From Tubulanus polymorphus (lineage: Eukaryota; Animalia; Nemertea), in the NCBI RefSeq assembly GCF_964204645.1, contig NC_134036.1, forward strand, positions 4,370,600-4,434,599: 64,000 bases of DNA, read 5' to 3'. The notes beneath the pieces were generated by a model, which worked only from the letters and a program-made list of their open reading frames with translations, searched no databases and had not been told where the DNA came from. Position numbers and translations under genes: made by a program. Of this stretch, positions 40,879 to 57,836 are shown in pieces (within the stretch, counting starts at the first letter, position 1; each line of letters opens with the position of its first letter).

Positions 40879-43562
40879 TAACATATATCGTCGGGAGTGA
40901 ACTCACAGCTCTAGCAAACATTTCGAACTGAATTTTCCTTTTTTCTCTCGCGGGTTTTTATCGTGTCGTTTGAACCGAGTATATAATGTTTCGTCAACAT
41001 TATCACATACGGATAACGCTGTTCCGGAGTAAGGTAAAGCGTGATTCCGGTCGAATGGTGCGCGACGGAAGTGTTTTCCGGAATCCCGTATAGACACCGA
41101 TCGAAACCTATGATAATATCACCACTCATTTCCAAATTCAGTATTTTTTTTCTTAGATAAACGTATAATGCCCGTCCGACCAACGTGCGAAGCGAAGACC
41201 AACAACGTAGTTTCAGATATTTTGCGACTTCTCCAAAATATCTCAAAAATAGAACGAACTTGCTGTCCCTATGTCTTCAAACATGTATATTGACGAATGA
41301 CAATTTCGAAAATTCTTGAAACTTTTAATAAGCCGAAATTTCAACCTACTCGAAGCCCCGCTCGTGGGCTATCGCTGCTATGAGCTTAAGGAGGTCTCGA
41401 CATTTACAGATAAGACCGACAAGGTAGGATAGCGCTACGCGCAGATGCTGCACCACCACGGGCTCCGTATTGCTCGGAACGCCATGCAGCTGCAGCAGCA
41501 GCGGTTCGGATATACGCGCGCCGAGTGATTTATGATGCATATTATCGGCGACAATATTAATGCGACGAGGCCTCATAAATCTGCCGATTGCAGCCCTCCC
41601 AGGAGAGCCATGCCTATGTGCGCATAGACGCATAGATAGCACTGTCATAGAAACCATTGCGCCGATGTATACGATATCGCGATATGTCTTTCTTTCTCCG
41701 TCGCGTTGCCCCACTATCGGAACCTACCTAGGAACCTAAAGGCGACGGTATCAAATACAAAACCCACAGTAGATTCGTAGAAAACGTTATTTTTCTAACA
41801 GATTCGAGGTTACTTCTAAACCCCATCACAAGAGAAGCTAAAATGATACAATAATGAATTACAGTAATTCAGATTATAGCGGTTACCGAGGAAGGGAACC
41901 AGGAGCTAAATTAGATAAATGAAAAAAAAATAAAAGCGAAGGTATATTTCGAATCGCGATAGGTTCTAAACAAATGTCCGTCTAAAGTCGATAAGTCGAC
42001 GAACCCACAGTAAGGAGACAATTTCTGTTTTGAAAATGGCTCAGAGAATTGAGTGAGAAACGTTAAACTATCTATTTAGGTTATTCTTCTTCGGTGGGAA
42101 ATATCAACTCAGGTCATTCCTTGTTCAAAACATCATCAACGACGTCACGAACTGAATATAATTTGGCAAACATTTTGTGTGCCAATGAAATGAATAGATT
42201 TTCTAACTATACAAGCAGTAGATATCGGAATTGATGAATTCGGGGAAGTACGATAAATCGGGGTTCAATATTATGTTTGAAACAATAGGTTTGAAGCTAT
42301 TTGTTTATAGTATACAGTTTTTATACCTGTTAATATTTTTTCCGTAACTTGGTACGCATTTTCTTTTGCTGTTTCATTGGCAATAGTCTTGTCTGATTAT
42401 GGTGTATAAAAACAATAAACTTAAGTTCGATTATCTATAATCGATGCTACGCGACGTAAACGTTGCTATAGCGGACCTGACGGTTGGATACAGTATGCCC
42501 CCGTTAGTATCGAAGCACCTCGGCGTCGATTAGAATTTAGAAACGACAATTGTATAGTATAGTAACGCGTGACGACCGTATCGACGCGTGCCTCGGCGAA
42601 GAGTTGACGAGAGTCGAAGTCAAGAATCGATCATTTCCCTATAAGTGACGCCGCTCAATTCTGGACCCAGTTCAACGGCGGTTTTAAATCACACGACTTG
42701 CCTGAAGTTGTTAGATTTGTTTTAGAAGTAATACGCTCTTAGAACGGTCTTAAATCTAAGCCTTGACGACCGTGCAACTGATGGTCCCTTAGCTCGTGTT
42801 TTACAGTCGCGATATGAGTCTTAAAGTCACCTTAAATCATAAGACAGAGAGATCTTCTTAAGTTGTCGTAGATCGACTATAAAACCTAGATGGTCTGCGA
42901 CCTTAGCCACGTCACCGTGCACGGACCCAGTAACGTAGTCGCCACGCAAATCGTCATACATCATAATGACTGGTCGATTAGCAATATACGTTAGATAGTC
43001 TAAGATTGGTCATGAACCTAGGTGACCACGATAAAACTACTGATCCCATGACCTCGTAACCTTCTTTCAAGGCTTAACCGATTAGTTCATTCCAAGTTTA
43101 AAAACCAGATAAAAGTTTGAACCCAGATGAATTTATTCCTTCTCAAATGTAAGATCAAATACTATCTAAGTTCTACATCAAAGCAAACACATTAAGACCA
43201 ATCTTAAGGCGGGCGTAGGTCGGCCTTGCGACGGCTTGCGACTCATTGCGACGCAATTCATTACGACCGCCAGCGACGATCGCAACTAGGCGCACACAGT
43301 CGCCGATAATCGCGTGCAACCGACTAATGCCCCCACTTGCGACGCAACGCGACGATCGCATCGCGTCGCAAGGCCCACCTACGCCCGGCTTTAAAGTAAC
43401 CTTAAATCATAAGACAAAGAGGTATTCATAAGTTGTCATAGATTGACTATAAAACAAAGATGGTCTACGACCTTAGCCGCGCGACCGTGCACGGACCCAG
43501 TAACGTAGTCGCCACGCAACTCGTCATACATCATAATGACTGGTCGATTAGCAATATAGATA

Positions 43563-44209
43563 GCGCGGTTGCGCCACCGCGTGGGATTTACGCGAAGCAG
43601 CAGAACACAAACATGGCCACTCTCTCAATTTTCAATGATAGAAATCGTGTGTGCATTTCAATTATTTCGACTGTTTGGGTTTTAAGGAACAATATAAGTT
43701 GATGATGTGATATGGCGATTTTAATTAATGATAATTCCGCGGTGAAGCTAATCACGAACGGTGCCGATTGAGTGTACAGCTGCCAAAAACACTGAAATGT
43801 GCGTAGTTGCGTAACTATTTGCAGTGAATTGCAGACGAAACATGAAGCCTTAACGGCCGTTTTGAAAAAAATTATACCAATCGCAATTCTAAAATAAAAA
43901 TGAGATAGAACCTAAGTTGAAATTCTGGCCATTTCTAAAATGTTATTACTAATTTTTAGTCAGTGCGGAACGTTTAGTTTTCCAACAATAATGAGGGGTG
44001 GTAGGTAGTCATGTAATTCAAGTCATCATTTATTACACGTTAATTCCGTGTTGTTGAAAAGCTCGCGAGTCCTGGACCAAACCCCAATGAACAATGTGAT
44101 CTGTGTGCTGGCAACAAATGCACACAGATCACACTACACTACCCATTACACACTCCAGTACCCACAGCTTTCATATATCCATCCAAATATTTAGTGTCTT
44201 TCTTCCTGG
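43563..44209 (+). mobile_element. CTRG-targeting hairpin element, copy A (5' junction deleted)
   Basis: Homologous to 47458-48122 and 55920-56595. Ends CTGG|GTGACC where empty modules read CTAG|GTGACC. Confidence 0.9.
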
Positions 44210-47200
44210 GTGACCACGATACAACTACTGACCCCATGACCTCGTAACCTTCTCTCAAGGCTTAACCGATTAGCTCATTCCAAGTTTAAAAACCAGATAA
44301 TAGTTTGAACCCAGATGAACTTATTCCTTCTCGAATGTAAGATCAAAGACCGGGGCACTTATATCCTCGATACCAGCGTTTTTCAGACACGTTTTGTGTA
44401 GATCTAAGACCTCAAACTTCATCATAGCACATCTAACAACTTAAAACCTTAAGGCGGGCGTAGGTCGGCCTTGCGACGGCTTGCGACTCATTGCGACGCG
44501 ATTTACTGCGACCGCCAGCGACGATCGCAACTAGGCGCACACAGTCGCCGATAATCGAGTGCAACCGACTTATTCCCCCACTTGCGACGCCACGCGACGA
44601 TCGCATCGCGTCGCAAGGCCGACCTACGCCCAGCTTTAGGATTTAGGGGCACTTATATCCTCGATGCCAGCGTTTTTCAGACACGTTTTATGTAGATTTA
44701 AGACCTCAAACTTCAACATAGCACATCTAACAACTTAAAACCTTAAGGCAGGGGTAGGTCGGCCTTGCGACGGCTTGCGACTCACTGCGACCGCCAGCGA
44801 CGATCGCGTCGCAACGACTCACCGACTCAACGACTCAACGATGTTACTGGTGACTATTGTCCTCAGAGTTTCTTTATTTAGGTACAACACAAGCAACACT
44901 GGAACTGTGGGTAACCCATATAGAAAATGCGGAACAGAATCGTATGTAGAACACGAGCCCACGTGACCGTGGAACTGGATCCCGAGTTGAAATGAACCCA
45001 AAAAACTGTGGAACTGGTTACGGAGTCAAAAAATACCCACGCAACTGCTGAACTGGATTCAGAGTCAATCATCACGCAACTACTGTGGAACTGGATCCAA
45101 CTAGTCGCACACAGTCGCTGACAACCGCATCGCAACCGACTTGCGCGGCCACTTGTGACGCAATGCGACGATCGCGTCGCGTCGCAAGGCCGACCTACGC
45201 CTGGCTTTAAAGTCACCTAAAATCATAACACAAAGAGGTACTCTTAAGTTGTCGTAGATTGACGATAAAACCAAGATGGTCTACGACCTTAGCCGCGCGA
45301 CCGCGCACGGACCCAGTAACGTAGTCGCCACGCAAGTCGCCATACATCATAATGACTGGTCGATTAGCAATATCCGTTAGATCGTCCATGACTGATCATA
45401 AACCTAGGTGACCACGATATAATGACTGACCCCGACCTCGTAAACTTCTTTCAAGGCTCAACCGATTAGTTCATTCCAAGTTTAAAAACCCGATAAAAGT
45501 TTGAACCCAGATGAACTTATTCCTCCTCGAATGTAAGATCAAAGACTATCTAAGTTCTACAGCAAAGCAAACACATTAAGACCGGGTCACTTATATCCTC
45601 GATGCCAGCGTTTTTCAGACACGTTTTAGTTAGATTTAAGACCTCAAACTTCATCATAGCACATCTAACAACTTAAAACCTTAAGGCGGGCGTAGGTCGG
45701 CCTTGCGACGGCTTGCGACTCATTGCGACGCGATTCACTGCGATCGCCAGCGACGATCGCAACTAGGCGCACACAGTCGCCGATAATCGAGTGCAACCGA
45801 CTTATGCCCCCACTTGCGACGCCACGCGACGATCGCATCGCGTCGCAAGGCCCACCTACGCCCGGATTTAGGATTTAGGGGCACTTATATCCTCGATGCC
45901 AGCGTTTTTCAGACGTTTTATGTAGATTAAGACCCCAAAATTCACCATAGCACATCTAACAACTTAAAACCTTAAGGCGGGGGTAGGTCGGCCTTGCGAC
46001 GGCTTGCGACTCACTGCGACCGCCAGCGACGATCGCGTCGCAACGACTCAGCGACTCAACGACTCACCGTTACTGGTGACTGTGGTCTTCGGAGCTTCTT
46101 GATTTAGGTACAACACAAGCAACGCTGGAACTGTGGGTAACCCATATACAAAATGCGGAACAGAATCTTACGTAGAACACAAGCCCACGTAACCGTGGAA
46201 CTAGATCCCGAGTTGAAATGAACATAAAAAACTGTGGAACTGGTTACGGAGTCAAAAAATACCCGCGCAACTGCGGAACTGGATTCAGAGTCAATCATCA
46301 CGCAACTACTGTGGAACTGGATCCAACTAGTCGCACACAGTCGCTGACAACCGCATCGCAACCGACTTGCGCGGCCACTTGTGACGCAATGCGACGATCG
46401 CGTCGCGTCGCAAGGCCGACCTACGCCTGGCTTTAAAGTCACCTAAAATCATAACACAAAGAGGTCTTCTTAAGTTGTCGTAGATTGACTATAAAACTAA
46501 GAAGGTCTACGACCTTAGCCGCACGACCGCGCACGGACCCAGTAACGTAGTCGCCACGCAAATCGTCATACATCATAATGACTGGTCGATTAGCAATATC
46601 CGTTAGATCGTCCATGACTGGTCATAAACCTAGATGACCCCATTACCTCGTAAACTTCTTTCAAGGCTTAACCGATTAGTTCATTCCAAGTTTAAAAACC
46701 AGATAAAAGTTTGAACCCAGATGAACTTATTCCTTCTCGAATGTAAGATCAAAGACTATCTAAGTTCTACAGCAAAGCAAACACATTAAGACCGGGGCAC
46801 TTATATCCTCGATGCCAGCGTTTTTCAGACACGTTTAGTGTAGTTCTAAGACCTCAAACTTCATCATAGCACATCTAACAACTTAAAACCTTAAGGCGGG
46901 GGTAGGTCGGCCTTGCGACGGCTTGCGACTCACTGCGACCGCCAGCGACGATCGCGTCGCAACGACTCAGCGACTCAACGACTCACCGTTACTGGTGACT
47001 GTGGTCTTCGGAGCTTCTTGATTTAGGTACAACACAAGCAACGCTGGAACTGTGGGTAACCCATATACAAAATGCGGAACAGAATCTTACGTAGAACACA
47101 AGCCCACGTAACCGTGGAACTAGATCCCGAGTTGAAATGAACCCAAAAAACTGTGGAACTGGTTACGGAGTCAAATAATACCCACGCAACTGCGGAACTG

Positions 47201-47457
47201 GATTCGGAGTCAATCATCACGCAATTTCTGTGGAACTGGATCCAACTAGTCGCACACAGTCGCTGACAACCGCATCGCAACCGACTTGCGCGGCCACTTG
47301 TGACGCAATGCGACGATCGCGACGCGTCGCAAGGCCCACCTACGCCCGGCTTTAAAGTCACCTTAAATCATAACACAAAGAGGTATTCTTAAGTTGTCGT
47401 AGATTGACGATAAAACCAAGATAGTCTACGACCTTAGCAGCGCGACCGTGCACGGAC

Positions 47458-48122
47458 CCAGGAAGAAAGCCACTAAATATTTGGATGGATATATGAAAGC
47501 TGTGGGTACTGGAGTGTGTAATGGGTAGTGTAGTGTGATCTGTGTGCATTTGTGGCCAACACACAGATCACATTGTTCATTGGGGTTTGGTCCAGGACTC
47601 GCGAGATTTTCAACAACACGGAAGTAATGTGTAATAAATGATGACTTAAATTGCATGACTACCTACCACCCCTCATTATTGTTGGAAAACTAATCGTTCC
47701 GCACTGACTAAAAATTAGTAATAACATTTTAGAAATGGCCAGAATTTTAACTAAGGTTCTATCTCATTTTTATTTTACAATTGCGATTGGTATAAATTTT
47801 TTTTAAACGGCCGTTAAGGCATCATGTTTCGTCTGCAATTCACTGCAAATAGTTACGCAACTACGCACATTTCAGTGTTTTTGGCAGCTGTACACTCAAT
47901 CGGCACCGTTCGTGACTAGCTTCACCGCGGAATTATCATTAATTAACATCGCCATATCACATCATCAACTTATATTGTGCCTTAAAACCCTAACAGCCGA
48001 AATAATTGAAATGCACACACGATTTCTATCATTGAAAATTGAGAGAGTGGCCATGTTTGTGTTCTGCTGCTTCGCGTAAATCCCGCGCGGTTGCGCGACT
48101 GCGCGGAGTGGGGCCGATACGT
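47458..48122 (-). mobile_element. CTRG-targeting hairpin element, copy B (complete)
   Basis: GGAC-CCAG[gaag...gatacgt]CCAG-TAAC versus the empty site GGACCCAGTAAC. Confidence 0.92.
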
Positions 48123-49716
48123 CCAGTAACGTAGTCGCCTAGTAAGTCGTCATACATCATAATGACTGGTCGATTAGCAATATACGATAGATAGTCTAAG
48201 TTTGGTCATAAACCTAGGTGTCCACGATACAACTTCTGACCCCATGACCTCAAAACCTTCTTCCAAGGCTCAACCGATTAGTTCATTCCAAGTTTAAAAA
48301 CCAGATAAAAGTTTGAACCCAGATGAACTTATTCCTTCTCAAATGTAAGACCAAAGACTATCTAAGTTCTACAGCAAAGCAAACACATTAAGACCAATCT
48401 TAAGGCGGGCGTAGGTCGGCCTTGCGACGGCTTGCGACTCATTGCGACGCGATTCACTGCGACCGCCAGCGACGATCGCAACTAGGCGCACACAGTCGCC
48501 GATAATCGCGTGCAACCGACTTATGCCCCCACTTGCGACGCAACTCGACGATCGCATCGCGTCGCGAGGCCCACCTACGCCCGGCTTTTGGATTTAGGGG
48601 CACTTATATCCTCGATGCCAGCGTTTTTCAGACACGTTTTAGTTAGATTTAAGACCTCGAACTTCATCATAGCACATCTAACAACTTAAAACCTTAGTCT
48701 CAGCTTGATTCCACTTTTGGCCTCATGTCACACGACTGCACCCCAGTGCCCTAACTATGAACTCGCTCTGCCAGAAACTTTTATAGGCCCTTCACAGCCG
48801 AACTATACCATAAATAATGGTTTCCTGATGTAATTGCGAATTAAGTTTCACTCAAGGACGAATAAACGAGAAAATGGTAACGGAACGTGGCTGGTCATAT
48901 CAGTTTACAGCCGATTTTTTTTTAGAGCCGAATTCAGAGGCGAGAAACTAATGAGCTACGCCGTCGCAGTCTGATGATGGCGGTCAAAAATTAGAAATGA
49001 TATATCTAGCTATTTTCGTCCAGGAAACATCATAATGAATTACGCCCGATGAAAAAAATTTTGTTTACTTAAATTGGTATAAGTTCTTTTTTTTGCCCGG
49101 AGACCCCGGCGAACCAAAACTTTTCAACCAAGTTCGCAGCGAAAGGGTGAGAATGGCTTTGAGTTTGGGACGTTGAACTGTTCAAGCAAGCCGCGTGCTC
49201 GAGGGTAACATAGCCATCGTAATACTGAAAACAATCGACTCGATGCAGCAAATCTATGTATTATACATATAGACTATCAGACTATCAAATTCCGACAACG
49301 ACGTGGACCATCGAGGAAATTTCGTTATCGAATCGCGGCGTGGGTGGCCGTTTAATTAGATAATCTCCACTCGCGATAGATACTCGTCGCGGACGAGAGG
49401 TTGCTGCCCGTCTGAGGAGGTGCCGCGGATAGAATCGGCAAGCGGGACACAAAGGCGTAGCGATACACTAAATGAACCCCGTTACAACAAGTGTTATGCT
49501 CGTTATAACCGATACTATAGATTGTTTTAAGCTATTTCCTAAAATCATAAAAGTTCTTCTATTTGGGACAAATACCGAGGTGTGTAATTAACCTATGATA
49601 AATCGTGATAACCGAAATCGTTACTAAGAGGGGCCACTGTATATTTATGTTTTGGCGCCACTTTTTACGACGAGGTTAACCAACGCCTATGCCAAAATAC
49701 ATGCATACCGACCCTG

Positions 49717-50080
49717 CGTTACTGGTGACTATGGTCTTCAGAGTTTCTTGTTTTAGGTACAACACAAGCAACGCTGGAACTGTGGGTAGCCCATACACAG
49801 AATGAGGAAATGAATCTTGCGTAGAAAATGAGCCCACGTAACCGTTGAACTGGATCCCGAGTTGAAATGAACCCACAAAACCGTGGAACTGGTTCCGGAG
49901 TCAAATAATACCCACGCAACTGCGGAACTGGATTCAGAGTCAATCAAAACCCGCACAACTGCTGTGGAACTGGATCCAGAGACAAATTGAATTCACAAAA
50001 CGCTTTAACTAGGGCCCGAGAGACAAGTTAAACCCACACAACGGCGGAACTGGATTCAGCGTCAAATTAAACCCACACAA
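49717..50080 (+). repeat. Degenerate array of GTGGAACTGGATCC-containing units; donor of the segment captured in three MITEs
   Basis: 49717-49978 matches the inserts at ~44843-45099, 46068-46325 and 46987-47244. Confidence 0.85.
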
Positions 50081-50679
50081 AAAGAGACAACTGAAACCAC
50101 TGACAAATCAAAGTCATTATTTATACAGAATTGAGCACATTTCGTTCAATTCAAATATAGACGATGACTCATTTTTGAAACTATACCAACGCGCGTCTAT
50201 TAGACGACGCATCGATTCGATCCTATTAAAGAACCACGACGAGAGCGGGTTTGTTACACGCACGCGCAGACGGCGAATAACCCGCGGTCATAGTCGATAC
50301 TGAAACATTTATCCGATCATTTGTAGAGTTTAATCACCGGGTAAACCCTGCCTACGGGCATCGGCGCCGTGACACCGAGCATCGATAGACAAAAACTAAA
50401 AATGTCAACCGTTATTTAAACTTTTCTCGAATATGTGTACGCAATTTATCTGTCACTCTGCGCGTTGTTGGTCGTCGATTCGGTAAAGCTAAACATTAAA
50501 TTGATCGGTCTCCGCTTAGGTATTTGTTAAATGCCCCGTTAACTAATACGGCTATGTTTAACGATACATTATATAGATTTTATATTTGAACCTTTTCGGG
50601 TAGTCGGTCCTTCAATTCTGTATCAGCATTGAACTAATCCCCTCCAATGAAACCTACCACTAACCTAATGGAGTAATAA

Positions 50680-50786
50680 TACCTCACAATCGTGAGTTAG
50701 AGTTAACTCCGAGTTAAAATTAGTTAATTTTCAATGAGTTAACTGTGGTAATGTCTTAACTCACAATATTGTGGAACTGGATCCAG
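50680..50786. mobile_element. Short palindromic MITE of the ...GTGGAACTGGATCCAG family
   Basis: GTGAGTTA...TAACTCAC arms. Relatives at ~21487-21563, 34948-35030 and 59503-59614. Confidence 0.65.
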
Positions 50787-52117
50787 TCCAATTACTCAAA
50801 GTACCAACAGGGGCGCACGGTTAGGAAATCAGTCAGTCAGTACTCTACAGGCACTAGAGTGGCCGGAATGGCCGCGCTCTGATACTCTGACGTGTATGGA
50901 CTAATAACTTATCATCATTCTAGGCATTGTCTCTCATCATTGCGAAATCATTGATCAACGATGTTTGTATATATACAATGTACGCTTATCCGTATACACA
51001 GTTTAGTAACTAGATATCTTTGTGTCTGTTGAATATAAACGACCACGCCCGTCTCTCAAATATACCAGAAAGCGGCAGTTGATAATACGATCCCCGCACG
51101 CGCGCTTCAAACGTATCTTATTAATCAAACAAGTAGCAAAATCGCGACAACGAACGAACACAAAGAAGCGACGCGACTGTCGACCGAGCAAAAGTAAAAT
51201 CATTGCAATGTTGTTTTTTTTCTCATTTAAGTAAAAACAGAGCGGCCAATTTCACTTTTCTGTAAGGATCATTATTGAATTATGGAAAAAATTGTTCGGT
51301 GTAAACTATTGGTATTAAACTATGGCGTAAGACCCTCGGGATTAATATCAATCATAGCTCTATTTCTATTTTCCTTTAATACGGAACAGGTCGGCCAATT
51401 TCTGGGCTTCTGCGATACCAGCAACTAACAAGTTGACTTTTTGTAACGAGAATTTTCGTGGAAATATGAAAAAATGGTATAAGTCCGTCGATAACATTAA
51501 TCATATATTTCTGTACACATCAAACAGAAGTCAAATTGATCGGAAATGGGGAAGGAAATGATGCGCTCGTGGTCGGGCTCGTATTTAAAAGCTACTTTGC
51601 ACACCGGGGCTTTCTTAGCTATGGAATGAACGTCCGAACAATCTGGAAATGGCTGAAAGTTGTAACACCTTGCCCGGCGACGACTTTCAAATGAATATAC
51701 TGGTAAATCATCATCCTTTCGTAGACGTATACGAAAGACCAGCGAAATACGAAAAAGCACTGCTATTGTCAGAACTAACGATACAACTAGAATTTGAAGT
51801 ATTCATCGATGGACCTTCGATCCATTAAAAATGCACATCTATGACTTGATTAGGGGCAGCGGTTAAAAGAACCAACGTTAAGGCCAACTAAAAAGCATTG
51901 GCATCAGACATCATCCTGGACTTCGAATTACAAAAAAAGAAATTGCTTGAATGCGAGAAAAGAACCGACGTTTAAAAGGCGCATCATTTTTCATGGGTTC
52001 GGCCAAAAAGCGCTAGCGAGAGAGGGCTCATACACAGGCGCGTCTAGCGCATATCAAAGCTGCAACACTCTTGGAAAATGATATACTATTCAAACGATAC
52101 GATAAAAGCTAAAATAT

Positions 52118-52590
52118 AGGACCAGTTGCACGGTCGGGGCTTAGATTTATGACCGCAGTTATACGGCTGATCTAGCACAATTAAAACCAGTCCCAGACCA
52201 GCTATAGCCGAACTAACAACTCAAGACCAGTCTTAGCTGATACTTATACTAAATCCAAACTAAAAAACCCAGACTTATCTAAGCCCGTTTTGTTTATATA
52301 TGCAAATCCTACAGCGTAGGACTTAGTCAAAGCTAATTTTTAGCCAGAATTCTTACAATTCAATACCGGTCAACGCTCAATTCGTTCGATAGCCAATCTA
52401 ACCAATCGACTGCCCATTTTTCCTATAACCATTCTGAAAACTGACGACCATTGTAAGCTCATTTTTTTATCTTTCATGATAAGTCAATGCTCATTTTTAC
52501 CCATAGCCAATCTAACAAAAATGAAGTGAAGTCTTAAGATTCGCGAGCGCTTAAATTAAAAAGTAAGACACGACTAGTGCAACTGATCCC
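52118..52590. mobile_element. MITE with GGACCAGTTGCAC / GTGCAACTGATCC termini
   Basis: Inverted ends. Related fragments at ~6200-6350, 7470-7720 and 42660-42790. Confidence 0.6.
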
Positions 52591-55500
52591 TCATATAAAC
52601 TGATGTATACACGTACATACCTCCAGTGTCGGCGGCAGTATTTGCGGAAAGCTGCGGAATCATCATACTACGAAATGCCGTTAGGGGGAGTCACTGAATA
52701 AAACCGTTTTAAACAGGACGATGATGACGACGACGACGACGACGATCACGACGACAAATGACAATATATTTACAGCACAGGCGATTTAGATATAATTCTT
52801 TTATGATGCTATATTATGATTATGACGTTTAAAACCGCACACACGACGGACAATATCAAGAAGAGAGACGGCTTCAGGTGACCGACCGACTGACTGACTG
52901 ACAATATCTATAGATATAGCTTATAAATGACTGAGTCGCCGACCTGATTTTTTTTTGTTTCGAATCGTCGCCGGCTCGTCAGCAGCAGATCCGTGTGTGA
53001 CGACAACGATGCTCGACCAAAACTCGTCCTAATATTCGCCGTTTCGTTTAAACTACAGTTCTCCGCGAGTTCCCTATACGCGTTCGGCGGCTAATATAGT
53101 TTACGCTCTGTTCTTCTAAGCGATCAGTCAGTTTTCCTCCCGTCTTCAGATTCGAGTAAATCAATTCTTGACGATAATACTGTTTTCCAGCTTTTTATTC
53201 AAACGCTATGCCCGTTTGTGGACTAAGTATACATCTACTACGATGTTCGTTAGTTTCCTTATCTTGAATATCTTCCTTCCGAAGCCGAGTCGAAAACACG
53301 GGCACGAAACTGACGAGCGAAATGGTTTGAAGCAATTTTTGAATTATCGACCGAATAATATTATGACGGACCAGGATGCGAGCTATCCTTATATTTCATC
53401 TATCGACTCTTGACACCGAGACCACGACTTCGCTCTATATAGAAAAGACGGACCAATTCGTATATTCCGATTCGAAAGTAAAGTATAGCGGAACGATATT
53501 CGATATTCGATACGCGATATTCGAGTCAAGACGTCGCGACCTAATTACTGTCTTCCTACGACTACGTCAACCTATCGCGAAGATCATCGATTATCCGTTA
53601 TTCGAGAAAACAAAAACGCGATGGCGCTTATCCACTCCCGGATTACGGAAGAAAATGCGAAATCCGTACGAAACGTAATCTGCGGCTGGTGCGAAACGTG
53701 TACCGCGCGGTTCGATCGCGATGCGGGGAATCCCAGAAAACGGTTATATCGTTCCTCTATGCCAAGCCACCGTTCTGACAACGATAACTACTCTGAAATC
53801 CGATGACGATATATACAGAACGTCGTCTTATCAGCGGACCGATCGAAAAAGTCAACTTCGATAGAAAGCGTTAAAAGCCGTTGTACGCGACGACGACGAC
53901 AACGGTTTCTTCGTCGTGATATGTATTACGTTACACTGTCACAGGCGGCGACTAGTATACTGCATCACGCGCTAAACAAACGACATCACCATCACACACA
54001 CAGAGGAGCGAGAGAGGAGAGAGCTCTGCATCAGCGCTCGGATTCTGAGTACTACACACCACGATACAACGCAGCGCTCACAGTCGTGCGTGTGTGTGTG
54101 TGGCTCGTCGTTTAGCTAGCGGCCATCATCATCGACGCTCGCTCGCTCGTTCGTCAGAATCTCTCGGTTATAAGCCAGCGCAGCAGCAGCGCCTAGTTAC
54201 ACCGACGAGCGTGTACACCAGAGGAAAAACCGATATCGGAAGACTGTGTATGTGATGACGTCGCAGTGTCCATATGCTCGCCTGGTCGCCCCGAGCCGAA
54301 GCAAGGGCGCGGAGCCAGGTTTTCTTCAAAGGTAGAGAGACCAGGTACTAAAGGGCACAAAAGTAATGACGAAGGGTACCCCAACGAGGCGAGCGGTGAA
54401 GGCGCGAAGCCATCAAAGTCAGGGTCTGGGTGCCCTCCCCACGATCATTTTGAAATTTTGGAGTTCTCCAAGGTTATTTGATGGTGATTTGATGGCTGTC
54501 GGGAATATTTCATATTTCAAAAAATTGAGGGGGCGGGGGGAATTTGTCACCATAGAGCCAGTGGAGTATATGTCTGATTCAGGGATGTGCCACATGGGAC
54601 AAACTTTCGGACCGTAGAAAATTTGGGGTATATTATTTAGGGTACTGTTACGAAGGACAAAATTTGCCACCAATAATTTTAGGATATTGTTAAAAAGGAA
54701 CACAATCTCCAGAGAGGAGATGGAGTTCAAATTATATTCACTATAGGACAGCTGGGAGCTGGGGTATACGTACATGATTTAAGGTACTGTAGTACAAGGG
54801 ACAAAATATGCACCATATACCATGTGAGATTAATAATCTAATAGAGTTCTGTTACGAAAATCATAATTACAAGGAAATTATTCGGCATATGCGAGTAAAA
54901 ATGGAATGAAGTCAGCCGCGAGTTCTTATCGATATAGATGAACAAACGCGTATGCATTTTTAATTAAGAAAAAGCTAATTAGCGTTAGTTTTTCTTAGCT
55001 TCTTTTACGCGCGAATTCGTCGTTTAATTCCGCCCCGATAAAAGCTTATGTATGAAGATTCGTTCTTTGCTCGTCGGCGATCGACGATTCGTATAAGTCG
55101 ATCATATCGATCCGTGTCGTGAGATCGATCGCTGGTCGATCGGTTATTTTGATTGATAGACGGCCGCCGTCGATACGGAGGATTAACCCTGCCAGACGAC
55201 GACCTTGAACGCTTCGAACGCGACCGTCGCGGATTATACGTCAATGTCGCCCGGTGTCGGAGATGATCTCCACGATGCGCGCTCGCGGGGCAATGACCCG
55301 AACTGCGGTTCTAGCTAGCTCAACTCTCCTTATCTCTCTCCCTCTTTCTCCGTCACTCTCTTACTGTCGCACGATCGAACCGACAGTTATGTCCGTCCAT
55401 AATTCGAATGTCGCTTTGCGTAAAAACGTGTAGCCGACTTCGAAGCCTACTTTGTCAATTTATATTTACTAGGGCTCCATGTTCGATACGTCGGCAAGCG

Positions 55501-55919
55501 AGGATCCACCAGGTGTCGCTAGTGCACGCATTCAGATAAAACGATTCCGAATTTCTTTCCAGATCCACAATTAGAATCAATCCATATTTTCTCAGAATTC
55601 GAAGAACGACGAATAAAATCGTCGCTATTTTCGAACCCCGAAGATCAATATGAATTTTCCGAGAGACGCGATTGGCCTAATGTCTCACGTGGAAAGGTCA
55701 AAATGATGGAAGCATCTATTTACACAGGCAAAGCTAGTTCATAAGTTGAATTATATACAGCAAAATATACACATGATATACGCGCAATTTGTGAGGGATT
55801 TTTACACATTTGAAACTAACTGAATAACTTATGTCCTATTATAATGTACTACTGAAATGTAACTGAATAAATCTAGCTACGAATGTCCTCCTAGAATGTC
55901 CTACTGAAATTGACACCAT

Positions 55920-56595
55920 CCAGGAAGACAGACACTCTAAATATTTGGATGGATATATGAAAGCTGTGGGTACTGGAGTGTGTAATGGGTAGTGTAGTGT
56001 GATCTGTGTACATTTGTGGCCAGCACACAGATCACATTGTTCAATGGGGTTTGGTCCAGGACTCGCGAGATTTTCATCAACACGGAAGTAACGTGTAATA
56101 AATGATGACTTGAATTGCATGACTACCTACCACCCCTCATTATTGTTTGAAAACTAAACGTTCCGCACTGACTAAAAATTAGTAATAACATTTTAGAAAT
56201 GGCCAGAATTTTAACTTAGGTTCTATCTCATTTTTATTTTACAATTGCGATTGGTATAATTTATTTTTAAACGGCCGTTAAGGCTTCATGTTTCGTCTGC
56301 AATTCACTGCAAATAGTTACGCAACTACGCACAGTTCAGTGTTTTCAGTGTTTTTGGCAGCTGTACACTCAATCGGCACCGTTCGTGACTAGCTTCACTG
56401 CGGAATTATCATTAATTAACATCGCCATATCGCATCATCAACTTATATTGTGCCTTAAAACCCTAATAGCCGAAATAATTGAAATGCACACACGATTTCT
56501 ATCATTGGAAATTGAGAGAGTGGCCATGTTTGTGTTCTGCTGCTTCGCGTAAATCCCGCGCGGTGGCGCATCCGCGCGGAGTGGGGCCGATACGT
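55920..56595 (-). mobile_element. CTRG-targeting hairpin element, copy C (complete, outside the array)
   Basis: CACCAT-CCAG[gaag...gatacgt]CTAG-CGGG. Confidence 0.92.
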
Positions 56596-57836
56596 CTAGC
56601 GGGAGTGAGCTGATGCATTAGAATCTCGTCATGTCATATCTTCGAATGTAATTTACCTTCCTTGAACTAGCGGCTGAGTTTGTTAAAACGAACGTTAATG
56701 TAGAGACTCACGAGCTTGGAGTTTTTACCGATGAAAATATAATCAGGAAATATTTGTCGAGTTTCTATCGATTTAAGAACGCAATTAAATTCACGAGCGC
56801 TCGCAATTCTCTTTACTTTTCACCCCGGCAATGTTGACACGAAAATAGCTGTATAGCGCAAACCGTTTTTCTAAGATCGAGGACCTGAATATTACTTCAT
56901 CGAAGCCGTTGGCGCAGCGGGAACTGATAGTTAGAGATCCCCAGCCCCCGGGGCTCGTAAGACACGTCGCGGTCGTAATAACGCGTACGAAGCAATCAAA
57001 ATGGCTTCTTTTCTCTTCGGCGCGCGCCGGTGCCCGTCGGAAAACCTCCCGGTGTCAAAGGGCCACGACGACGTTCCGCGCGATCCTACTTATCAATTAC
57101 ACAACCACCGCAATCATCGGCATCGCGGCTGCTGTCAACGCCGGGAAACGACGACGACCGCGGCACTCTCGTCGAGGGTAATCTCGTCGACGTGCCCTGC
57201 CGCTCGTTCGCCCCCGACGCTGACAGCCTGTCAACCCGTCAGCGGCGCGCGTAGAGCTTATCGAAAACGTTCGGACATAATTTTCTCGAGTGCGACGACT
57301 CCCAATCGACCTCGTATACAAAATATCGTCGGAGAGGTTGAAGTAGTAAAATCCTACAGAATCTATACCGCAACCAACAGGCGACGGGTAATACCTTCAC
57401 CGAAAACCCATACGTAAATATTTTACTCGGTGAAAGCCCGTCCCTTACGCTAGTGAAGGAACCGATATCGCGCTGCTACCGAGGTCTTGTGTACGTGACG
57501 TCATAGCTTGTTTGCCAACCCGTGCTGGAGACCTACCATACGTAACAACAAAAGTATTCAGGGCGATTTTCAGACTTTGAGGGTCTGTTATGTAAATCTG
57601 TCATTTTATTTGCCAACTAATATGGCGGCGTCGACGTCGAAAAAGTATGTGGTTGCTATATATATGTGCTTGTGTGAGAATGTCTCTTTCATGCTAATAA
57701 GGAACCAATTATGCTGTAATTGCGGAAAGTAAGGATCCGCTAGTCGTCTCTCTATGTCTCCCGCATGCCAGTCGGGACCCGATTATGATGCTACTTTGGC
57801 AAGTGACGATCCGTTCACTACGGTGCTAAGTCTGAG

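Follow-up and report, generated by a model that had tools for sequence, protein, structure and literature searches.

A young, high-copy element family of the nemertean Tubulanus polymorphus with precise, duplication-free insertion at CTNG and a possible HUH-type mode of transposition

The genome of the nemertean Tubulanus polymorphus harbours a family of short non-coding elements whose insertion is shown here to be precise, oriented, site-specific and duplication-free. We consider it somewhat probable, at roughly 55%, that these elements are young non-autonomous DNA transposons moved in trans by a sequence-specific HUH (Rep or rolling-circle) enzyme that nicks and joins single strands. The family was recognized in a 64,000-nucleotide stretch of contig NC_134036.1 (positions 4,370,600 to 4,434,599 of the forward strand, assembly GCF_964204645.1), hereafter the window, in which three copies with a mutual identity of 95-97% lie on the strands and at the positions where a first-pass annotation of the sequence had placed them (here and below, a slash marks a junction):

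43563..44209, plus strand: copy A, with the 5' end (~20 nt) and 34 bp of upstream flank deleted and the 3' junction intact, CTTCCTGG/gtgacc
47458..48122, minus strand: copy B, complete, 665 bp, with minus-strand junctions ttaCTGG/ACGTATCGG...CTTCCTGG/gtcc
55920..56595, minus strand: copy C, complete, 676 bp, with junctions ccgCTAG/ACGT...CTGG/at

The element begins with ACGTATCGG and ends with CTTCCTGG, copy C containing an internal 9-bp tandem duplication and a 2-bp insertion. Genome-wide BLAST recovered at least 742 candidates and 485 5' ends of this 665-bp family, whose size is ~700 copies in several subfamilies, with a pairwise identity of ~97% and a distance of ~1.6% from the consensus, in agreement with the initial view of a recently active, non-autonomous mobile family. 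Flanks are unrelated in more than 90% of the copies, which are spread over at least 12 contigs. A few copy pairs with common flanks (L024/L025, L077/L078) are segmental duplicates. No ORF was found in the 665-bp element, and Rfam searches at E <= 10 returned no tRNA, 5S, 7SL, hammerhead or HDV-like match to it. Neither poly(A), microsatellite tail nor TSD was seen at its copies, which lack the hallmarks of a SINE, retrozyme or non-LTR derivative (Pol III head or ribozyme, 3' tail, variable TSDs).

Paralogous empty sites for two of the copies are visible within the window itself:

45309..45316, minus strand: paralogous empty site of copy B, ttaCTGG/gtcc
45404..45411, plus strand: paralogous empty site of copy A, aacCTAG/gtga, with sisters at 43021/2, 48217/8 and 46633/4

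The flanks of copy B are contiguous in four sister modules (42926/42927, 43496/43497, 45312/45313 and 46538/46539), and the modules empty for copy A read aacCTAG/gtgacc at 43021/2, 45407/8 and 48217/8. These empty sites, and a second, independent set from beyond the window, show that insertion is precise, that nothing is duplicated and that the terminal CTGG is owned by the element; copy A ends in CTGG where its empty target reads CTAG, so that CTGG is not a copy of the target. Beyond the window, a filled site with both junctions intact (C3:19196901-19197910) reads CTAG/ACGT...CTGG/GTGTTAG, and its paralogous empty counterpart reads CTAG/gtgtttg. The first-pass annotation had assigned one tetranucleotide to the target and the other to the element, and had described the latter as lacking both TIR and TSD. 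Both statements stand, since empty sites keep their CTNG while the far end is CTGG even beside a CTAG target, comparison of the two ends of the element revealed no terminal or subterminal inverted repeats, and empty sites show no duplication. It is hardly credible, then, that we are dealing with a blunt-inserting, Spy-like DDE transposon or with a mere segmentally duplicated repeat. Spy elements do insert without TSD, and the pairs mentioned above are indeed segmental duplicates, but the absence of inverted repeats, the unrelated flanks of nearly all other copies and the very existence of empty sites speak against both.

The target follows a simple rule. Among 100 5' flanks, the tetranucleotide was CTGG in 43, CTAG in 39, CTTG in 15 and CTCG in 2, that is CTNG, with C, T and G at positions -4, -3 and -1 in 99/100 by hand count and in 45/45 by script. 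The 3' flank is AT or GT, rarely TT, with T at +2 in 49 of 51 cases. The logo predicted beforehand, CTRG/R, was thus right as to the invariant terminal CTGG, but CTRG proved too narrow (CTTG makes up 15% and CTCG 2%) and the 3' flank, (A/G)T, is more than R. Hundreds of full-length copies are base-exact at both junctions, without duplication, deletion, tail or filler. Base -2 is variable at the 5' junction (G 43, A 39, T 15, C 2) and a constant G at the 3' end; base +1 is a constant A at the 5' junction and A, G or T at the 3' junction; base +2 is a constant C at the former versus a constant T at the latter. Element and target bases at these three positions were mixed at either junction in 0 of ~100 copies each, which places the crossover exactly at G^A and the exchange at a single phosphodiester bond, with an overlap of at most 1 bp.

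As far as junction sequences can tell, such a single-bond exchange speaks against a tyrosine or serine recombinase and in favour of a HUH-type nick-and-join enzyme. The single-strand reading is consequently the best fit, and the Crypton option left open earlier is disfavoured. That option, a non-autonomous element whose tyrosine recombinase joins a double-stranded circle (CTGG-ACGT) to a similar target (CTNG-AT), seems to us improbable, even though circle junction and target agree in their C, T, G and A. Cryptons, like the element, lack TIR and TSD, show in fungal families 4-6-bp terminal direct repeats of which one is target-derived, and have given rise to abundant non-autonomous derivatives in animals (PMC3212892). 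However, tyrosine recombinases exchange strands over a 6-8-bp overlap (PMC3212892), with which three positions that differ in most events and are never mixed appear incompatible, and the excess of 5'-truncated copies described below would go unexplained.

Subterminal hairpins were located in the three copies as follows:

48083..48106, minus strand: 5' subterminal GC hairpin in copy B, a pair of CCGCGCGG palindromes, one of them mutated, with 8 nt between them
56556..56579, minus strand: equivalent 5' GC hairpin of copy C, here intact, CCGCGCGG-N8-CCGCGCGG, 8-bp stem, -12 kcal/mol
44095..44133, plus strand: 3' subterminal hairpin in copy A, 76 nt away from the terminal CTGG, with a 14-bp stem and an 11-nt loop
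47534..47572, minus strand: equivalent 3' hairpin of copy B
55998..56036, minus strand: equivalent 3' hairpin of copy C

The GC hairpin lies 16 nt inside the end that adjoins the target CTNG. Of the two hairpins originally described, the 3' stem is well founded (folding z = -5.8, with equally good folds in 0/200 shuffles), whereas the 5' CCGCGCGG pair is present but folds no better than shuffles, its context being GC-rich.

Under the HUH-type reading, the enzyme would cleave 3' of C-T-N-G and 5' of a purine at three places, namely the upstream junction of the element (CTNG^ACGT), its downstream junction (CTGG^AT) and the target (CTNG^(A/G)T), and the ends would be rejoined with no bases duplicated or lost. 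Viewed on the opposite strand, the cuts would read RY^CNAG, the GC hairpin would lie 16 nt before the 3' end in the manner of a Helitron terminator hairpin, and the end retained by truncated copies would be the leading (origin) end. We infer both the enzyme class and the strand that moves. In favour of this model, the layout of the element equals that of IS91 (see below), and Helraiser likewise has a CTAG or CTTG terminus and forms precise head-to-tail circles (PMC4778049). Against it, the 3' hairpin stands 76 nt from the end instead of adjoining it, 5'-truncated copies with ordinary-looking 5' junctions are also expected from reverse transcription, and no protein has been found.

Precise head-to-tail CTGG/ACGT junctions occur at C4:11267409, C2:10578866 and C2:18508247 and in the partial head-to-tail tandems L034 and L036, and the circle junction predicted from the window, TTCCTGG/ACGTATC, exists in the genome as such a tandem junction. 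We infer a circular or rolling-circle intermediate, although the tandems could instead arise by self-targeting, since each insertion re-creates the target CTGG/AT at its own 3' junction and tandems are therefore possible without a circle. Copies truncated at the 5' end outnumber those truncated at the 3' end by ~10:1; their 3' junctions are exact, while their 5' junctions are ordinary-looking and without CTNG. This excess, which the first-pass annotation had not foreseen, hints at transfer of the opposite strand, but it also keeps alive an RNA-mediated origin, in which a site-specific LINE or Penelope-like element nicking CTNG/AT would lend its reverse transcriptase and endonuclease to a non-autonomous retroelement. 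Penelope-like elements form pseudo-LTRs, which the partial tandems recall. We nevertheless regard this origin as distinctly unlikely, because hundreds of full-length copies are exact to the base at both ends, the element has neither a poly(A) nor a microsatellite tail, neither a tRNA- nor a 5S-like head and no ribozyme of the hammerhead or HDV-like type, and the 3' end stays CTGG at CTAG and CTTG targets, so that target-primed microhomology is not copied in.

Longer copies sharing these ends had been expected to encode HUH, Rep-helicase or tyrosine recombinase domains, but pattern searches with the 13-nt 5' end and the 12-nt 3' end (sensitivity 32-75% per copy) found none, nor was a transposase with these ends found, and no recombinase is linked to them. 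Six-frame searches of the whole genome gave no match to Y2_Tnp at E <= 0.1, a weak negative because control genomes were matchless too, 0 matches to Y1_Tnp (PF01797), for which controls match in six genomes, and none to the Viral_Rep (CRESS-Rep) and Rep_trans Pfam families. The sole HUH family detected was Helitron_like_N, with 58 matches in the genome, several of them intact and near-identical copies.

It could be argued that the element is a divergent non-autonomous Helitron, mobilized by one of the RepHel proteins of this genome despite its different ends, a possibility that we judge unlikely. Canonical Helitrons begin with 5' TC, insert between host A and T and end in 3' CTRR, with a hairpin ~10-12 nt upstream. 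With Helitrons and Helentrons the element shares a eukaryotic host, the lack of TSD and TIR, a terminal CTGG that fits CTRR, subterminal hairpins and precise head-to-tail junctions, circles or tandems being expected from such a system; abundant non-autonomous derivatives are a further common trait, RepHel genes are present in this genome, and a GC hairpin lies 16 nt from the end on the opposite strand. However, the element starts with AC (ACGT; CCAG on the other strand) and not TC, its flanks are CTNG and RT (~100 copies each), so that it enters between G and A and not at A/T or T/T, and its CTRR-type end has the hairpin 76 nt away, the GC hairpin belonging on the opposite strand to the end reading ACGT. 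Moreover, the two RepHel families with definable ends are canonical (F1, A/TC...hairpin-CTAG/T) or Helentron-like (F5) and unrelated in their ends to the element; in six sampled RepHel groups, with flanks incompletely covered, no similarity to the element's ends was seen, and no RepHel match lay within 10 kb of a perfect element 5' end on contigs C1-C3. Helentrons (Helitron2) are recognized by subterminal inverted repeats of 12-15 bp, by a palindrome at the 3' end and by insertion into a T-rich (TT) target (PMC4067079), whereas the element has no inverted repeat between its ends, no subTIRs and a CTNG/RT target.

The IS91 family comprises bacterial HUH-Y2 rolling-circle insertion sequences, and on our analysis the element appears to resemble them more than any described animal transposon. 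IS91 generates no TSD, inserts at the tetranucleotides CTTG, GTTC or CTCG, rarely CTGG, with T in second place, carries its own cleavage tetranucleotide at the far end, has a pair of palindromes on the target side and a single one at the opposite end, and is known to form circle junctions (PMC13181058). Likewise, the element lacks TSD and TIR, lies oriented beside a tetranucleotide with T second, owns a tetranucleotide at its far end and has two palindromes at the target-side end and one at the other. In contrast to IS91, its host is an animal without a detectable Y2_Tnp homologue, its far-end palindrome stands 76 nt from the cut instead of adjoining it, its truncated copies retain the end away from the target tetranucleotide, and no read-through (one-ended) products were seen.

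To our knowledge, the HUH transposons described from eukaryotes fall into just two groups, Helitrons/Helentrons and Replitrons, the latter not being known from animals. A Y1 Rep transposase with an oligomerisation domain characterizes Replitrons, which insert immediately downstream of RG and are reported from plants, algae and protists but not from animals (PMC10288648). The element resembles them in its oriented insertion downstream of NG (R in 82%), the same short motif at both junctions, a right-end palindrome, copy-and-paste behaviour and non-autonomous partners. Yet both repeats of Replitrons are element-owned, whereas the upstream CTNG is here variable and stays in the empty site, and the element shows neither the variable TSDs nor the fuzzy right ends of Replitron-1. 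We would only tentatively propose an undescribed group of animal transposons, distinct from Helitrons and Replitrons, whose enzyme may be a single-strand transposase that follows IS91-like logic and is either of a new eukaryotic HUH type or novel in some other way. The features of such a group would be a CTNG^R target, a CTGG cleavage site of its own and a pair of palindromes at one end with a single one at the other. This animal family is very young and high in copy number, follows a clean 6-bp target rule and shows exact junctions alongside visible empty sites; it acts like bacterial IS91 and yet matches none of the recognizable Rep genes of its genome. CTNG^RT and two short ends provide a sharply defined substrate with which to seek a new transposase, as well as a simple annotation rule for elements missed by tools based on TIRs or TSDs. 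If found, the enzyme would rank as a candidate sequence-specific single-strand DNA integrase; were it to prove an ordinary RepHel, the family would show instead that the target and end specificity of Helitrons can shift much further than is known.

IS200/IS605 elements are prokaryotic Y1 HUH transposons that move by peel-and-paste. The element is like them in inserting 3' of a tetra- or pentanucleotide without duplication, in a right-end cleavage motif that is related to the target but different from it, and in having hairpins at both ends; it differs in its host, an animal whose genome contains no Y1_Tnp match, and it is high in copy number and forms tandems, which suggests copy-and-paste transposition instead of peel-and-paste.

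The three copies of the ~665-bp non-coding repeat in the window are mutually 95–97% identical and lie as follows.

43563-44209, plus strand: copy A, ~665-bp non-coding repeat
47458-48122, minus strand: copy B, ~665-bp non-coding repeat
55920-56595, minus strand: copy C, ~665-bp non-coding repeat

The first-pass annotation had taken them for a mobile family, a claim that the genome both bears out and sharpens. A BLAST search of the whole assembly (268 Mb, 77 contigs; contigs are hereafter C1, C2 and so on, the window being C12:4370600-4434599) with copy B as query returned at least 742 candidates. Identity was 95–100% over nearly the full length in 40/40 scored candidates, spread over 11 contigs. 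Searches with a 5'-end pattern (22 nt, at most two mismatches) and a 3'-end pattern (25 nt) gave 485 and 256 matches genome-wide, respectively, and none with the reversed-pattern controls. Pairwise identity among 28 full copies was 96.8%, with ~1.6% divergence from the consensus, and several subfamilies could be told apart, one mark being a 2-bp indel close to the 3' end and others a T/G variant and a ~10-bp insertion. Overall, the family amounts to a very recent burst with several source copies. Public metagenome and viral contigs, scanned with exact 24-mers, contained no match to the element.

Copies A and B are housed in a tandem array of ~1.2-kb modules (window 42822-48696; at least five units, 60–98% alike), which provides their empty sites. 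The flanks of copy B are contiguous in four sister modules (1.2 kb), where the empty site reads ttaCTGG^gtcc, the caret marking the junction here and below. Copy A is without the first ~20 nt of the element, together with 34 bp of adjoining flank, and at its 3' end the element meets the flank as CTTCCTGG^gtgacc, whereas the four matching empty modules show CTAG^gtgacc or, in one of them, CTAG^atgacc. Since the filled site carries CTGG and not the target's CTAG before gtgacc, the CTGG is owned by the element. A second and cleaner case lies outside the window, at C3:19196901-19197910, where the copy is bounded by the junctions caaacatgtcaCTAG^ACGTATCGG and, on the other side, TTCTTCCTGG^GTGTTAGTTTGTGAGTCC; the matching empty site, tcaaacatgtcaCTAG^gtgtttgtttgtgagtcc, comes from a paralogue of the host repeat. 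Insertion of the element is base-exact, oriented and without any duplication; the absence of a TSD and the element-owned terminal CTGG, both asserted at first reading, hold in the window modules and at the C3 site alike. A solo LTR was ruled out by the lack of a TSD and of TG...CA ends, and by copy B being a lone insertion with empty sites.

The bases flanking the copies define the target.

Flanks of the element, by hand tally of the search output and by script count on fetched loci
5' flank tetranucleotide, hand tally (n=100): CTGG 43, CTAG 39, CTTG 15, CTCG 2, CTAC 1
5' flank, script count: C, T and G invariant at -4, -3 and -1 in 45/45
3' flank dinucleotide, hand tally (~7 chance 12-mer matches and 1 tandem left out): AT 69, GT 19, TT 4
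3' flank, script count: A 37 and G 13 at +1; T in 49/51 at +2

Position -5 is poor in G, and the target rule is H-C-T-N-G^(A/G)-T, with fitting sites at a density of ~1.7 per kb. From the CTRG target of the first-pass annotation, the fixed C, T and G stand, but R was too narrow, as CTTG and CTCG account for 15 and 2 of the 100 flanks. At three further loci fetched from the genome (L074, C1:13236430-13237600; L075, C3:18817550-18818720; L076, C1:18519100-18520290) the element occupies one shared position of a host repeat, its own parts being 95.5–97.4% alike against just 81–93% for the flanks. This looks like three independent insertions in one site of a dispersed repeat, pointing to gene conversion or to a target preference that extends past the 6 bp; transduction or read-through, tested on these loci with their common 5' flanks, was set aside because both flanks are homologous.

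In a circle or tandem the ends meet as CTGG^ACGT, against CTNG^RT in the target, so that the two differ at -2 in more than half of events, at +1 in about a quarter, and at +2 in every event (element C, target T). Upstream, the -2 base is constantly the target's and the bases at +1 and +2 are the element's; downstream, the -2 base is constantly the element's and those at +1 and +2 are the target's. Mixed junctions, save single point mutations, were absent among ~100 of each kind. Since the junction bases are never mixed, we infer from the sequences that strand exchange is limited to the bond between the -1 G and +1. The overlap used by serine recombinases is 2 bp. That of tyrosine recombinases spans 6–8 bp (PMC3212892). 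With either enzyme, heteroduplex and hence mixed junctions would be expected in a considerable fraction of the copies. A DDE enzyme was set aside, since it requires inverted ends and the element has none. A CTNG^purine motif is common to both element junctions and the target, and an HUH/Rep-type enzyme, nicking and rejoining one strand at one phosphodiester, would account for all the junction data. Such an HUH-type reading, to which we assign a probability of about 0.55, is the best supported one, its basis being junction logic and architecture rather than a protein.

The circle junction predicted by the first-pass annotation, CTTCCTGG^ACGTATCGG, is indeed present in the genome as exact head-to-tail tandems at three loci (C4:11267409, C2:10578866 and C2:18508247), and partial tandems join element positions 399-665 to 1-665 and 59-665 to 1-78 and beyond in two fetched loci (L034, L036). 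Each insertion re-creates a CTGG^AT target, random reuse of which predicts ~1 tandem, so the observed number is a small excess that may reflect rolling-circle read-through or a preference for targets resembling the element's own end. The last 13 nt of the element are matched, with at most three mismatches, by seven non-tandem flanks against ~2 expected.

Truncation is strongly one-sided, with an estimated 5' to 3' ratio of ~10:1. Copies truncated at the 3' end are rare (2–3 in all, in searches of 75% sensitivity), and 7/10 fetched 3'-anchored oddities are 5'-truncated, starting at element positions 430, 461, 472, 486, 517, 628 and 639, all joined exactly at CTGG^AT and lacking CTNG on the other side. 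This asymmetry would follow if the CTGG end were joined first and the opposite end sometimes lost. For a rolling circle, this would make the complement, 5'-CCAGG...hairpin-N16-ACGT-3'^CNAG, the strand that is transferred, and its GC hairpin, 16 nt from the end, would serve as a terminator of the Helitron kind. Reverse transcription starting at the 3' end would also fit the ~10:1 excess of 5'-truncated copies, but the full-length junctions are far too exact for it and the element is without tail, ribozyme or Pol III head, and we regard this origin as quite improbable.

The element has no ORF. The palindrome CCGCGCGG occurs twice, 8 nt apart and 16 nt inside the target-abutting end, and the pair gives an 8-bp stem (-12 kcal/mol) no better than shuffles of the same GC-rich stretch; a perfect 14-bp stem (z = -5.8) is found 76 nt before the CTGG end. 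Element positions 518-525 carry CTCGCGAG, a related palindrome and the third of its kind, and after it comes TCCTGGAC, which repeats 8 nt of the head-to-tail junction.

47589-47605, minus strand: internal CTCGCGAG and TCCTGGAC (element 518-534)

In L056 and L057, internal deletions of independent origin rejoin at most 3 nt from this site. Internal deletions recur at the GC hairpin, a hot spot where they begin at element positions 21-34 in L054, L056, L057, L058 and L059, and likewise in copy A and the second unit of L017. Two of these loci hold mini copies, of 36 bp (L054, C5:17146127) and 44 bp (L059, C8:6226464-6226507), made of the first 21–27 and the last 15–17 nt between CTAG/CTGG and AT/GT flanks. 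Each is unique, the 44-bp sequence having a single exact copy in the genome, and a transposing subfamily was therefore rejected; they are deletions in situ or footprints. The 5' end is CpG-rich (10 CpG in 55 nt) and at many loci the changes between copies are mostly CpG-to-TpG/CpA, which suggests methylation of the copies after insertion. An Rfam search of the element at E <= 10 gave no match of relevance, and a ribozyme- or SINE-type element was rejected on that ground.

Among known systems, IS91 is the closest working analogue. It transposes via a single-stranded circle with no TSD into a tetranucleotide with T second (CTTG, GTTC, less often GTCC or CTCG, once CTGG), its own cleavage tetranucleotide, CTCG, lying at terIS beside one palindrome and its target-abutting end, oriIS, carrying two (PMC13181058). 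The element shares this layout of tetranucleotide target, own far-end tetranucleotide and two plus one palindromes, but differs in its animal host, in having no detectable Y2 transposase, in the distance of its far palindrome from the cut, and in that truncated copies keep the other end. Helitrons resemble it in their CTRR-type 3' end, circles and absence of TSD (PMC4778049) but differ in 5' end and target, and Helentrons require subTIRs and T-rich targets (PMC4067079). Replitrons, which are reported from plants, algae and protists, insert downstream of RG, with one short motif recurring at their two junctions, both repeats being element-borne, and with variable TSDs and fuzzy ends in Replitron-1 (PMC10288648), whereas the upstream CTNG here is the target's. 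Given these differences, we file the family under none of the four; a tentative suggestion, on balance doubtful, is that it stands for a group of animal transposons not described before.

Longer copies were sought with IUPAC 'not-this-base' patterns fixing the 13-nt 5' end or the 12-14-nt 3' end and forbidding the family base at 1–4 internal positions. These terminal 12-14-mer searches found no longer or autonomous element with the same ends, and all fetched non-family matches were deletion derivatives, nested foreign TEs, duplications, truncations or chance matches.

Fetched non-family matches, by locus
Nested foreign TE: L033, L053, L063
Local duplication: L032
Internal deletion: L054 (36 bp), L059 (44 bp), L057, L056, L058, L069
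Truncation: L052, L055, L060-L068
Chance 12-mer: L061

Y1_Tnp and Rep_trans were without a match when the genome was scanned in six frames with Pfam profiles, and so were Y2_Tnp and Viral_Rep, the latter two being weak negatives as control genomes were likewise blank. Helitron_like_N was the only HUH family matched (58 matches in about six groups). Ends were defined for two families of the Helitron Rep-helicase (RepHel) and flanks sampled for four other groups, none of which showed likeness to the element's ends or GC palindromes, and on contigs C1–C3 no RepHel match lay within 10 kb of a perfect element 5' end. The autonomous partner is missing from the assembly, has different end sequences, or is not recognisable to the profiles used.

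A young canonical Helitron of this genome has the ends A^TCATATTATAA...ACCCGTC-AGC-GACGGGT-ATTCAG-CTAG^T. It spans ~6.3 kb (C4:18787393-18793648; L050:6955 to L051:1670), with the hairpin ACCCGTC/GACGGGT, and appears recently active because it carries a 1168-aa open RepHel frame and has near-identical sisters on C41 and C2. A young Helentron-like family is present in three 99% identical copies (L070 and L071, C8:6104000-6119999; C1:15290250-15298030; C12:8010196-8017984) whose RepHel-type open frames, split into three pieces, total ~2,200 aa, and at its 3' end a T-rich tail comes after a short palindrome (TTGCC...GGCAA). Downstream of a RepHel ORF, at C8:2680810-2681040 (L072:1510-1740), is inserted a very high-copy short repeat of ~225 bp, ~91% identical at dozens of loci on many contigs.
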